From Macrostomum lignano (taxonomy: Eukaryota): a stretch of 64,000 bases of DNA. The notes under the pieces are model-generated. The model was not told the DNA's origin, ran no database searches, and saw nothing but the letters and a program-made list of their open reading frames with translations. The first letter of the stretch is position 1; every line of letters begins with the position of its first letter. Made by a program: the position numbers and the translations under genes. Shown piece by piece: positions 2,759 to 18,355 of the stretch. The stretch covers positions 124,001 through 188,000 of the forward strand of contig NIVC01000080.1 of assembly GCA_002269645.1 (NCBI GenBank). The letters run 5' to 3'.

Positions 2759-5700
2759 CTATAGCAACAGGCCCGACTCTTCCAGTTGCACAATATCTAT
2801 TGAGTTCTCGCTGATTGAAGCGTCACCTGGAAAAAGCAAAAAATTAAAAATTGGTTTTTCATTACTCGTCGAGTTTTATTTTCAAGTTGAAATTCTTAAA
2901 CTTGAAAGCTCATACTGCCAATTTAGCTCGTAATTAAATCTTAGAAAGCAGGAATGTACATGTATTCTCGTATTTTCCACACCAGCACCAGGGGCACCAG
3001 CACAAGGGGCACCAGCACCAGAAGCACCAGCACCAGGGGCACCAGGACGATTTCCTCTTGCCCCAGCCCGTGACACTGAACTACTGTCAGTAGGATAGTG
3101 CAAATACTGATAAAAATTGACTCACTCTTATTCGACTCCCAGCTGCCGTCTGGCGCTTTGCTCTTGTTGTGCGTCCGCCTCACGTGACTGTCGTGGGCGG
3201 CGTGCGAAGCGAACGCCTTACCGCAGTACTTGCACTGTGAAGGGAATTAGCAATGCAGTTAGTTGCATTAGTTCTAGATGGTACATTGGAATTCGGATTA
3301 AATCAAACAATAAACGCATGTCATTTTTCACTTGAATCGATGCACCAATGGTTGATATTCAAAGCTTTCACAGCCCCTAAAATTTACTTTCCTCAATCGT
3401 CGCTGACAGAAAAATTCATAATTCCCTTTTTGTAAATCTCGGCTCAAGCCTCAGTGAAGGTGCCATAATTCTGACGTTTAGGGATTGTGAAGTTTAAGGA
3501 TTGTGACGTTTAGGGATTGTGAAGTTTAAGGATTGTGACGTTTAGGGATTGTGACGTTTAGGGATTGTGACGTTTAGGGATTGTGACGTTTAGGGATTGT
3601 GACGTTTAGGGATTGTGACGTTTAAGGATTGTGACGTTTAAGGATTGCGAAGCTTGGGATGCGAAGCTGGGGATTGTGAAGCTGGGAATTGCGATGCTCG
3701 GGGTTGTGAAGCTGGGGATTGTGAACCTAATGATTGTGAAGCTGGGGATTGTGAAACTGATGATTGTGAAACTGATGATTGTGAAGCTGGGGATTGTAAA
3801 GCTTGGGATTGCGAAGCTGGGGATTGTGAAGCTGGGGATTGTGAAGCTGGTGATTGTGAAGCTGGGGATTGTGAAGCTTGGGATTGTGAACCTGATGATT
3901 GTGAAGCTGGGGATTGTGAACCTGATGATTGTGAAGCTGGGGATTGTGAAGCTTGGGACTGTGAAGCTGGGGATTGCGAAGCTCGGGTTGTGAACCTGGG
4001 GATTGTGAAGCTGGGGATTGTAAAGCTGGGGATTGTAAAGCTTGGGATTGCGAAGTTGGGGATTGTGAAGCTGGGGATTGTGAAGCTGGGGATTTTGAAG
4101 CTGGGGATTGTGAAGCTGGGGATTGTAAAGCTGGGATAGCTTGGGGATTGTGAAGCTGGTGATTGTGAAGCTGGGGATTGTGAAGCTTGGGATTGCGAAG
4201 CTGGGGATTGTGAAGCTGGGGATTGTAAAGCTTGGGATAGCTTGGGGATTGTGAAGCTGGGGATTGTAAAGCTGGGGATAGCTTGGGGATTGTGAAGCTG
4301 GGGATTGCGAAGCTCGGGTTTTGAACCTGGGGATTGTGAACCTGATGATTGTGAAGCTGGGGATTGTAAAGCTTGGGATAGCTTGGGGATTGTGAAGCTG
4401 GGGATTGTAAAGCTGGGGATAGCTTGGGGATTGTGAAGCTGGGGATTGCGAAGCTCGGGTTTTGAACCTGGGGATTGTGAACCTGATGATTGTGAAGCTG
4501 GGGATTGTGAAGCTGGGGATTGTAAAGCTGGGGATAGCTTGGGGATTGTGAAGCTGGGGATTGTAAAGCTGGGGATAGCTTGGGGATTGTGAAGCTGGGG
4601 ATTGCGAAGCTCGGGGTTGTGAACCTGGGGATTGTGAACCTGATGATTGTGAAGCTGGGGATTGTGAAGCTGGGGATTGTGAAGCTAGGGATTGTGAAGC
4701 TGGGGATTGTTAAGTTTGGGGATTGCTATGCTTGGGTATTGTAACGCTTTGGGTCCAGGTGCATTTTAACTGTCTCTGTCAGCATTCTTAAACATTTATA
4801 TGTTCATTTTGTCTTTTTAGCTAGCCTCGTTGCCCAAATTGCTTACAATCATTTAACACTTAAGCTGCGGGGGTTCAACTCACTTTTCTATGCAGTAAAA
4901 CAATGTTTGCTATCAGAGGTATTGATAGAGCCATGACTCCCTGCATTTCAGGATCACTCTTAGCAGCTTTCCATATGCAGATAATGATCGGTCCCTCTCA
5001 GCCAGGAGCCCGTCTTGCCTATCTCAACTGCGCCAAGCAATTTGAGTTGCTGAGATTAAAAGAAAACATTTTCCTGTATACACAGGAAGAGAGACACTTT
5101 CTAAAAGAGAGACCTCAAGATGACTCTGCCTGCCACACTCTCATGTCGGTTTACTTGGCAATAGAAAAACAATTTTCGTGCTTAACTCCCAAACGCCGTG
5201 TGATCAAACATTCGGCTCAAACAATGACCATGTTTCCCTATGCATCCCTCAAGTGGTAAGGAATTTGGAAAGTTTGTCCCAAAGCGCTCTTTAAAGGAGG
5301 GCCGCCTCCCTGTGATTCTTTCACGGCTCCGTGGCCCGTGTGAAAGAGCCCTGCTCTGACAGATGCTGTTGAAGAATTTTACTGGTCGCATTTTCAAGAA
5401 ATTTCTCAAAACTTTGTTAGCCTAAAATCTCCAAAATACCCTTAAAAAGTGGCTGAATGAGAGCAGATTGCAAAAATGTCAATAAAATAAGTTCGAAAAT
5501 CGAAATATTCTTGTACGATGTACGAACTCGGTCGCTGCGTGAGGGGGTTGTAGCCTGGTGGTTAGAGCGTTGGACTCATGACTGAAAGGTCAGGGGTTCG
5601 ATTCTCGATCCACTCAGAAGAATTTGTGTCCTTGAGCAAGACACTTAACTCTGAATTGCTTCAGTTCACCCAGCTGTAAAATGGGTGCTAGCATTAGCTG

Positions 5701-17700: not shown

Positions 17701-18355
17701 CCTCAAAACCAAAGCCCAAACAATTAGAATTTATGCAGTCCTCAAAACCAAAGCCCAAACAATTGGAATCCACGCGGTCCTCAAAACAAAATCCCAAACA
17801 ATTAGAATCCACGCGGTCCTCAAAACAAAATCCCTAACAGTTAGAATCCACACAGTCCTCAAAACCAAAGTCCAAACAATTAGAATTTATGCAGTCCTCA
17901 AAACCAAATCCCAAACAATTGGAATCCACGCAGTCCTCAAAACCAAATCCCTAACAATTAGAATCCACACAGTCCTCAAAACCAAAGTCCAAACAATTAG
18001 AATCCATGCAGTCCTCAAAACCAGAGCCCAAACAATTAGAACCCACGCAGTCCTCAAAACCAAATCCCAAAAAATTGGAATCCACGCAGTCGTTAAAACC
18101 AAAGCCCGATTTCCCCCAAAAGTTCAGAGTGCCACTGAGAGTAAGCGACATTGAAGCTCACCGAATCAACTGCTGGTGCTGCAGGTGGTGCTGCGGCTCC
18201 AGACCGAATGGTACGACAGGCGGCATGGGCGGCAATGGAGGCGGCGGCTGCTGTGGAGGCTGCTGAGCTGCACCGAACTGGTGCGGTAGCTGCATCAGAT
18301 TTTGTTGCTGGTGCTGATGCTGGTGCCGATGCTGCTTTTTGGTTCGATGCTCCAT
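2759..18355 (-). CDS. PRDM14: PRDM14-like C2H2 zinc-finger transcription factor (spliced; minimal model 554 aa)
   Basis: Phase-consistent GT-AG exons: 18355-18162 (ATG, Q/P-rich), 14853-14387 (P/A/Q-rich), 8441-7983, 6892-6763 ([42 protein letters not shown]), 6249-6123 ([42 protein letters not shown]), 6041-5931 ([37 protein letters not shown]), 3234-3126 ([22 protein letters not shown]...), 2826-2759 ([22 protein letters not shown]). The fingers are almost identical to vertebrate PRDM14 ZF1-5 as I recall them. The linkage of the 5' exons and any extra internal exons is less certain than the finger exons. Confidence 0.88.
3471..4745. repeat. 15/16-bp minisatellite (GGGATTGTGAAGCTG)n in a PRDM14 intron
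   Basis: 16-bp GGGATTGTGACGTTTA units grade into 15-bp units, with recurring variant blocks. It explains ORFs 3631..3993 and 3645..4139. Confidence 0.95.
5543..5855 (+). mobile_element. tRNA-derived SINE with a MIR/CORE-like central domain
   Basis: A-box TAGCCTGGTGGTTAGAGC, B-box GGTTCGATTC, then 5625-5685 TGTGTCCTTGAGCAAGACACTTAACTCTGAATTGCTTCAGTTCACCCAGCTGTAAAATGGG, which resembles the MIR core (TGTGACCTTGGGCAAGT.ACTTAAC...CTCAGTTTCCTCATCTGTAAAATGGG). AT-rich tail at about 5832-5855. Confidence 0.75.
6281..6735. repeat. Compound microsatellite (CCTG)n(TCTG)n filling the intron between PRDM14 finger exons
   Basis: Directly visible. It explains ORFs 6220..6840, 6269..6949 and 6546..6896. 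Confidence 0.98.
8493..8752. repeat. 38-bp minisatellite (TTTACCATCGGCTTCCACCACCCTCTACTAGCTCACAC)n, about 7 copies
   Basis: Unit starts at 8531 and 8569 are 38 bp apart. Confidence 0.93.
8827..9091 (-). CDS. Candidate additional internal exon of the PRDM14-like gene
   Basis: Acceptor tttccctttccag and donor GAG|gttagt. The open frame [39 protein letters not shown]...NNG ends in phase 1, compatible with the exon at 8441. Its phase-0 start needs further small upstream exons (candidates near 13400-13440 and 10741-10788). Confidence 0.35.
11284..12925. repeat. About 1.5 kb (TCTA)n/GATA array followed by (TCTG)n
   Basis: Directly visible, with rare TGTA variants. It explains ORFs 11004..12989, 11228..12943, 11278..12981 and 12770..12979. 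Confidence 0.99.
16832..17035 (+). mobile_element. Interspersed repeat, left copy of an inverted pair (partner at 22240-22439)
   Basis: agaaattgacagagcggtgcacaacaaggagagatcagatttctcgggcggaggccgcgctgacaagac...cagagtcctcaaaaccaaatcccaaaca is the reverse complement of 22240-22439, with few mismatches. Confidence 0.9.
16996..18105. repeat. 39-bp minisatellite (GCAGTCCTCAAAACCAAATCCCAAACAATTAGAACCCAT)n, about 28 copies
   Basis: 39-bp period (a 13-aa repeat in the artefactual ORFs). Lies in PRDM14 intron 1 and ends about 55 bp from the exon 1 donor. Confidence 0.97.

Follow-up and report, generated by a model that had tools for sequence, protein, structure and literature searches.

PRDM14 is studied in mammals for its roles in pluripotency and the germline, for which it relies on the co-repressor CBFA2T2 bound at its pre-SET/SET region. 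Products that lack the PR domain are a recurrent theme of the PRDM family (RIZ2, EVI1 versus MECOM, the PRDM16 short form, BLIMP-1 beta). Among flatworms, many of which evolve fast and commonly lose domains, Macrostomum lignano is a free-living species that has neoblasts. In the mouse, Mtgr1/CBFA2T2 is an obligatory partner of Prdm14 and is bound via the pre-SET/SET region (PMC4749557; review PMC5816753). A survey of the PRDM family, in which members were searched by their PR domain, reported Prdm14 to be absent from ecdysozoans and did not include it in the list of subfamilies that flatworms have lost (PMC4760075). Here, a stretch of 64,000 nucleotides (nt) of the M. lignano genome was analyzed (contig NIVC01000080.1, positions 124,001 to 188,000 of the forward strand; hereafter the window), the minus strand of which carries a PRDM14-type zinc-finger gene at 18355-2759 of the window. 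It is likely that this gene is the M. lignano PRDM14 orthologue, with the ancestral architecture, the N-terminal motifs and zinc fingers (ZF) 1 to 5 kept, the PR module replaced and finger 6 lost.

The protein searches, for each of which the best 120 matches were listed, returned PRDM14 proteins of cnidarians, spiralians, echinoderms and vertebrates as the best matches listed for the finger region, with 85-92% identity and a best E-value of 1.8e-93; other C2H2 proteins are about 40-50% identical to these fingers, and the match to PRDM14 is far beyond chance. The residues at the base-contact positions -1, 2, 3 and 6 of ZF1-5 are identical (20 of 20) to those of Lingula, oyster, nemertean, frog, zebrafish and Nematostella PRDM14, and one of these positions differs in starfish PRDM14; the 20 identical residues support the earlier suggestion that DNA specificity is probably kept. 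For an intron comparison, the exons of Lingula PRDM14 were mapped on its genomic locus: five introns of the M. lignano gene agree with Lingula in position and phase (Table 1), and two more agree in phase. Two short motifs are found toward the N-terminus. The first, (D/E)L..VLYGY, is shared by most full-length PRDM14 orthologues of the retrieved set, which spans cnidarians to vertebrates, and is degenerate in M. lignano (LLFFSGYAR), where it also carries an insertion. The second is the spiralian motif LSHGI(D/E)(R/K)IL of nemertean, mollusc and brachiopod PRDM14, the M. lignano version of which reads LSYG|IERILAS and is split by an intron. Because the fingers, the contact residues, five introns and two N-terminal motifs, one of them degenerate, agree, and not the fingers alone, the assignment of the locus as the M. 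lignano PRDM14 orthologue is well founded, in accordance with the first-pass annotation, which had called a PRDM14-type gene almost identical to PRDM14 over ZF1-5.

Lingula (P0147), oyster and nemertean PRDM14 are the proteins with which the gene is best compared: their ZF1-5 are 86-92% identical to those of M. lignano, with the same base-contact residues, and the distance from the GI(D/E)RIL motif to ZF1 is 193 amino acids in Lingula versus 222 in M. lignano. In contrast to these spiralian proteins, M. lignano PRDM14 has no PR/SET domain and no ZF6, ends in a short acidic tail instead, and contains long poly-Ala and poly-Gln inserts that part the two N-terminal motifs.

The PR/SET-coding sequence is absent from the locus. 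A tblastn search of the window with PR-bearing PRDM14 proteins gave matches to the fingers only. Two PRDM14 PR profiles were run, with filters off, against every open reading frame (ORF) of at least 12 amino acids in the six frames of the whole 64 kb: the PRDM14-specific profile gave a best E-value of 2.3, with weak matches that were scattered and non-collinear, and a broader profile of 89 sequences did no better. The same six-frame searches covered the other frames of 8493-7900 for a frameshifted PR domain, and nothing was found there. When the 614-amino-acid protein was searched against Pfam at E<=10, zinc-finger (C2H2) families were matched, and neither PRDM2_PR nor SET; Pfam searches of intron translations, with stops replaced by X, gave zero families in the three minus-strand frames of 6890-11300 and 12950-16950. 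A PDB sequence search with the 213 residues from GIERIL to ZF1 returned nothing at E<=10. The SET/PR profile search of translations of 6900-18400 that the first-pass annotation had called for is contained in these runs (Pfam over the two intervals named, the profiles over 64 kb).

The positive controls were strong. The Lingula protein scores 1.9e-44 for PRDM2_PR and 3.2e-9 for SET in Pfam, the same six-frame profile method gives 8.5e-40 and 2.7e-16 for the two Lingula PR exons, and the equivalent Lingula segment matches 5ECJ, the PRDM14-CBFA2T2 structure, at 9e-57. As a control on divergence, the PR half of Cichlidogyrus was detected at 2.4e-4, and the Echinostoma pieces were weak but collinear. 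The window contains no N bases. Given the conserved introns, any PR exons would have to lie within the 2.1 kb that separate exon 3 from the ZF1 exon, an interval which is fully sequenced and consists of exon 4 and introns of 385 and 1090 nt. With all searches negative and strong controls, the proposal of a PR-less gene is upheld.

The fingers and exon 4 lie where the first-pass annotation had placed them, and its 10-residue candidate for a PR relic is present at 8343-8314. This candidate, which had been compared with NWM..VNCAR, was rejected together with a second 10-residue stretch that had been matched by eye to EELLVWYG: in the 213-amino-acid segment, no envelope of the PRDM14 PR profile was obtained even at E<=1e6 (Z=1), and the 89-sequence profile gave -2.2 bits. 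The claim of a 10-residue relic is thus without statistical support.

In the position of the PR domain lies exon 4 (459 nt), flanked by phase-1 introns that correspond to those around the Lingula PR exons 4 and 5 (429 nt). The first-pass annotation had described this exon as low-complexity, which was confirmed: it is open in the frame given, is in phase 1 at both ends, and belongs to a 213-amino-acid middle segment that is 52% A/G/S/P/Q and 15% hydrophobic, compared with 30-36% A/G/S/P/Q and about 31% hydrophobic residues in the PR-containing segments of seven orthologues. For exon 4, Pfam gave no PR or SET match at E<=10, the PR profile gave -2.2 bits, and no PDB match was obtained at E<=10. 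An AlphaFold2 prediction for P0121, an automated model of the same gene (see below), assigned residues 141-374 a predicted local distance difference test score (pLDDT) below 50 and no secondary structure; the disorder call is weak because this was a single-sequence run (mean pLDDT 45) in which low scores were obtained for parts of the finger array as well. The PR/SET module of about 140 amino acids appears to be replaced by a low-complexity segment of similar length that is probably disordered. As an exon of comparable length lies between the same phase-1 introns, the most likely course is decay of the PR-coding unit in situ, accompanied by loss of its internal intron, and not a deletion; alternatively, unrelated sequence may have been substituted for the PR unit.

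A sixth finger was found neither in the ZF5 exon nor downstream nor anywhere else in the window, by regular expression or tblastn, so that the count of only five fingers stands. Compared with the Lingula exon for ZF5 and ZF6, the M. lignano ZF5 exon is shorter by 45 nt; ZF6 is the least conserved finger among the orthologues, and is absent in Caenorhabditis as well. The finger-like string CSICARNFLLIASVMFCLHMPC (CSICARNF...CLHMPC) at 2641-2576 on the minus strand, about 120 nt past the stop, was discarded as a ZF6 relic on account of its spacing and composition; loose finger-like matches of this kind turn up by chance at other places in the first 20 kb. What follows ZF5 is a tail of 36 amino acids with 7 acidic and 3 basic residues and a TAG, i.e. 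the short acidic tail and stop that had been described.

In the set of retrieved PRDM14-type proteins that have 90 or more residues ahead of ZF1, the named entries in which no PR hit was obtained come from nematodes and M. lignano; a PR hit is likewise missing from a few metagenome proteins without a name and from an unrelated zinc-finger protein. All other non-nematode full-length PRDM14 proteins retrieved are PR-bearing. For two parasitic flatworms, Echinostoma caproni (L001, P0037) and Cichlidogyrus casuarinus (L002, P0038), the annotated PRDM14-like models begin too far downstream: FGPI... and NWMHFVR...PGEELI are encoded upstream of the annotated Echinostoma gene on the same strand (6576-7016, 9107-9376), and a degenerate PR half, ETAWMAKVRVSK...GKELLL, is encoded directly upstream of ZF1 in Cichlidogyrus (3773-4336, 4428-5036). 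Because these diverged PR-coding frames lie upstream of the annotated models on the same strand, both species keep a degenerate PR domain. They belong to the same phylum as M. lignano and have the same finger array, but still encode a recognizable, though diverged, PR domain; within flatworms, as far as these two neodermatan loci show, the loss seems specific to the Macrostomum side.

Nematode PRDM14-type genes encode five fingers with identical contact residues and no detectable PR domain (P0023, P0028, P0032, P0070, P0075, P0077), and no PR-coding frame was found in the flanking 8 kb, upstream or downstream, of the Caenorhabditis sp. 36 gene (L004, gene 8001-10603). The proteins of Caenorhabditis sp. 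36 (P0023), C. angaria (P0028) and C. bovis (P0032) resemble the M. lignano protein in their five PRDM14-type fingers and in the lack of ZF6 and PR domain; they differ in their size of about 250-270 amino acids and in their N-terminus, in which the LYGY and GIERIL motifs were not seen. A loss in nematodes that occurred independently of that in M. lignano is supported by this comparison. The lineage-specific loss put forward by the first-pass annotation is supported as far as the sampling reaches: two neodermatans with a diverged PR domain and the PR-bearing non-nematode full-length proteins agree with it, whereas PR loss is not unique to M. lignano, because Caenorhabditis has PR-less PRDM14-type genes. 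The comparison also suggests that the ecdysozoan loss of Prdm14 may be, at least in part, a loss of the PR domain and not of the gene. A literature search yielded no publication on Prdm14 in flatworms, Macrostomum included, and PR loss in a PRDM14 orthologue appears to be not unique but undescribed.

The PR-minus isoforms of other PRDM genes are similar in being finger proteins without a PR domain that possibly act differently from the PR-plus form. They arise, however, from internal promoters or splicing of a PR-plus gene, while the M. lignano locus has no PR-coding sequence; for a PR-plus isoform of the same locus, no PR-coding sequence was found in the 64 kb on either strand.

If expressed, the protein would still recognize the PRDM14 DNA motif, because all contact residues are kept. 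Docking of CBFA2T/MTG as in mouse PRDM14 would be impossible here, because the pre-SET/SET surface is gone. Compared with mouse and human PRDM14 (5ECJ), the M. lignano protein has the same DNA-reading fingers and probably a similar target motif, and both are presumably transcriptional regulators; the MTGR1/CBFA2T2-binding pre-SET/SET surface (PMC4749557), in contrast, is without counterpart in M. lignano. Since there is no PR surface, a different effector region, as put forward by the first-pass annotation, would follow if the protein is active; the output would then have to come from the retained N-terminal motifs or from the new disordered region. The best guess is that YGIERIL could serve as an eh1-type docking site for Groucho/TLE. 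The eh1 pattern [FY]xIxxIL is characteristic of Groucho/TLE-dependent repressors, in which it is bound by the WD40 domain; YGIERIL agrees with this pattern, and a match over seven residues is weak evidence. That the PR module was exchanged for a disordered region and that the protein acts through recruitment of Groucho/TLE by YGIERIL is a tentative proposal with a rather small chance of being correct.

The gene model, a nine-exon ORF of 614 amino acids, was assembled from splice-site logic; GT-AG borders are found at all introns, the phases are compatible throughout, and the frame is uninterrupted. The coordinates are summarized in Table 1, and each of the five fingers called over four exons of the minus strand by the first-pass annotation is present. 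There is no in-frame ATG within exon 2, hence translation must start in an exon further upstream; the candidate at 18355 is the earliest ATG in its open frame, and the phase of the exon 1 donor suits the acceptor at 14853. Exon 1, without homology support, is the least certain exon of the model. At the 3' end, a donor GTGAGT at 3126/3125 splices the ZF5 exon to the last exon. A codon-usage log-likelihood score, trained on the small set of PACSIN and finger exons and therefore a weak test, was best in the model frame for exons 1 to 4, which gives modest support for coding.

The query with the low-complexity exon and the fingers matched P0121 (UniParc UPI0007A32B81), an unnamed automated M. lignano model of 557 amino acids. 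Its residues 1-156 are 100% identical to exon 2, and exons 3, 4, 5, 7, 8 and 9 are also matched. The model is without a start codon, omits the ZF2-3 exon (6249-6123), probably because the intron upstream of it is a (CTGT)n array, and contains a partial readthrough of the last intron (3125-2827), which is a (GTGCTG)n-type repeat. Because its tail differs by one substitution from that of the window, and the repeat number at the 3' end differs as well, P0121 derives from another assembly or allele; despite its errors, it independently supports the chain of exons 2, 3 and 4, followed by ZF1. When P0121 was compared with a library of 1.84 billion representative sequences, in which Macrostomum orthologues were sought, the best 150 matches were all giant poly-zinc-finger proteins.

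Table 1. Features of the M. lignano PRDM14 locus and of its surroundings in the window
Feature	Position	Strand	Description
Exon 1	18355-18162	-	Gln/Pro/His-rich N-terminus of 64 amino acids; ATG 18355-18353; phase-2 end, donor GTGAGC; least certain exon
Exon 2	14853-14387	-	Pro-rich; degenerate N-terminal PRDM14 motif at 14633-14589, then poly-Ala and poly-Gln; ends ...GLSYG, phase 1
Exon 3	9006-8827	-	starts with the remainder of the split motif LSYG|IERILAS (14396-14387 + 9006-8984)
Exon 4	8441-7983	-	153 amino acids, 459 nt, 68% GC; Ala/Gly/Ser/Pro/Arg/Gln-rich low complexity; phase 1 at both ends, compatible with its neighbors
Exon 5	6892-6763	-	ZF1 (C2HC type, 6875-6807) and first half of ZF2; based on tblastn to PRDM14 orthologues and on introns
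Exon 6	6249-6123	-	second half of ZF2, and ZF3 to ...NKHLR; segment of 43 residues nearly identical to PRDM14 orthologues
Exon 7	6041-5931	-	end of ZF3, ZF4 (6014-5952), linker ...GEKPFK
Exon 8	3234-3126	-	ZF5 (3234-3169), then 14 residues without a sixth finger
Exon 9	2826-2759	-	68 nt; acidic tail of 22 amino acids and stop TAG (2761-2759); acceptor ...tttttccag, phase-1 join
ZF2, split	6779-6763 / 6249-6201	-	
ZF3, split	6179-6123 / 6041-6036	-	
Intron shared with Lingula			within Gly of (H/Y)G|I(D/E)RIL, phase 1
Intron shared with Lingula			two residues ahead of EGY of ZF1, phase 1
Intron shared with Lingula			within Arg of C(N/T)R|SFEK, phase 2
Intron shared with Lingula			between R and V in NKH(M/L)R|VHSGE, phase 0
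Intron shared with Lingula			after EKPFK (PFK|CK), phase 0
Tandem arrays	2142-22228		in almost every intron; 3481-4725, 6278-6755, 8491-8753, 11284-12927, 16996-18107, others
Inverted repeat	16832-17028 / 22244-22439		about 197 nt, 97-98% complementary, arms 5.2 kb apart
Minisatellite	16996-18107		39-bp unit; adjoins one arm of the inverted repeat
Minisatellite	21881-22228		42-bp unit; adjoins the other arm
PACSIN/syndapin gene	29478-41966	+	complete; F-BAR domain and C-terminal SH3 domain
Acidic ORF	52298-52822	-	no Pfam match; near the RFX5-like ORF
RFX5-like ORF	53824-54123	-	matches RFX5 N-terminal domain (PF18326, 8.4e-7)
PHD-finger-like ORF	60254-61316	+	PF00628, E = 1e-4, just below the Pfam cut-off; overlaps the start of an ORF of 281 amino acids without Pfam match

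Several points weigh against a PRDM14 orthologue with an exchanged PR module. Exons 1, 4 and the last were placed by splice logic, gene prediction and the weak, small-training codon-usage score, and exon 4 is symmetric (phase 1/phase 1) and may be skipped or non-exonic; the PR domain is not restored either way. The prediction of disorder is weak, as low scores extend into the finger array, and the eh1 reading concerns a seven-residue pattern, the first position of which is His in other spiralians, in place of the Phe or Tyr of eh1. A PR-bearing PRDM14 paralogue may also exist elsewhere in a recently duplicated genome. In that case, the gene would be one of several PRDM14 copies in a partly duplicated genome, another copy would be PR-bearing and canonical, and the present one would be a subfunctionalised PR-minus duplicate that resembles the PR-minus isoforms of other PRDM genes, but as a gene of its own; we regard this as unlikely. 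It would fit the several M. lignano PACSIN paralogues in the database, which speak for gene duplicates being common in the species, and the recurrence of PR-minus products across the PRDM family, and only the best 120 matches of each PRDM14 search were visible; among the PRDM14 matches listed, however, which comprise dozens of phyla and species and scores down to 307 bits, P0121 is the sole M. lignano protein, and this is negative evidence only.

A decaying gene, with intact fingers, unexpressed or on its way to a pseudogene, and with a low-complexity middle that reflects neutral drift, would account for the loss of both the family-defining domain and finger 6, for the tandem arrays in almost every intron, and for the fact that, among the matches listed, the locus has no M. 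lignano protein in NCBI or UniProt and is represented at the UniParc level by P0121. We consider this very unlikely: the frame of 614 codons is unbroken over nine exons, the splice sites are canonical, finger identity across phyla is 85-92% with every base-contact residue retained, the short N-terminal motifs are retained as well, and each N-terminal exon has its best codon-usage score in the frame of the model. The locus is rich in micro- and minisatellites, sequences prone to assembly collapse, and PR exons might have been concealed by a collapsed or deleted segment, so that the PR-less appearance would be an artifact. This is highly improbable, in that the window is without N bases, the 2.1-kb interval from exon 3 to the ZF1 exon is fully sequenced and holds exon 4, and P0121, from another assembly or allele, shows the same chain of exon 3, exon 4 and ZF1.

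The repeats at the locus deserve description in their own right. Two of the introns consist of little else than tandem arrays: 6.9 copies of a 38-bp unit make up most of the 385-nt intron that separates exon 3 from exon 4, and (CTGT)n (480 bp) accounts for most of the 513-nt intron ahead of the ZF2-3 exon. Intron 2 contains an (ATCT)n array of 1.6 kb. The inverted repeat encloses exon 1 and the presumed promoter; it may be a foldback structure, or its arms may be two copies of a mobile element that carries repeats. The neighboring PACSIN/syndapin gene has two M. lignano proteins as its best matches, and its exon cores show 100% identity with A0A1I8G1F0 / BOX15_Mlig022815g1 of this species, which places the window in M. 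lignano and bears out the first-pass suggestion of an animal with adult pluripotent stem cells; several diverged M. lignano PACSIN paralogues are in the database. The RFX5-like ORF and the acidic ORF near it are probably exons of one RFX5/RFX7-like gene, and the PHD-like locus may be a single-exon or transposon-derived gene. A search of the window against Rfam matched no family.

The PR-less PRDM14 of M. lignano opens no long-standing question. It serves as a warning for surveys that identify PRDM members by the PR domain, which miss genes such as this one. It also offers a natural experiment on what the fingers and the N-terminal motifs do alone, in a neoblast-bearing flatworm for which good RNA interference tools are available. 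If the exchange of the PR module and the recruitment through YGIERIL are real, then, together with the nematode loss, the indispensable ancestral core of PRDM14 would be the fingers and the N-terminal motifs, and the PR-CBFA2T link would be an optional layer.

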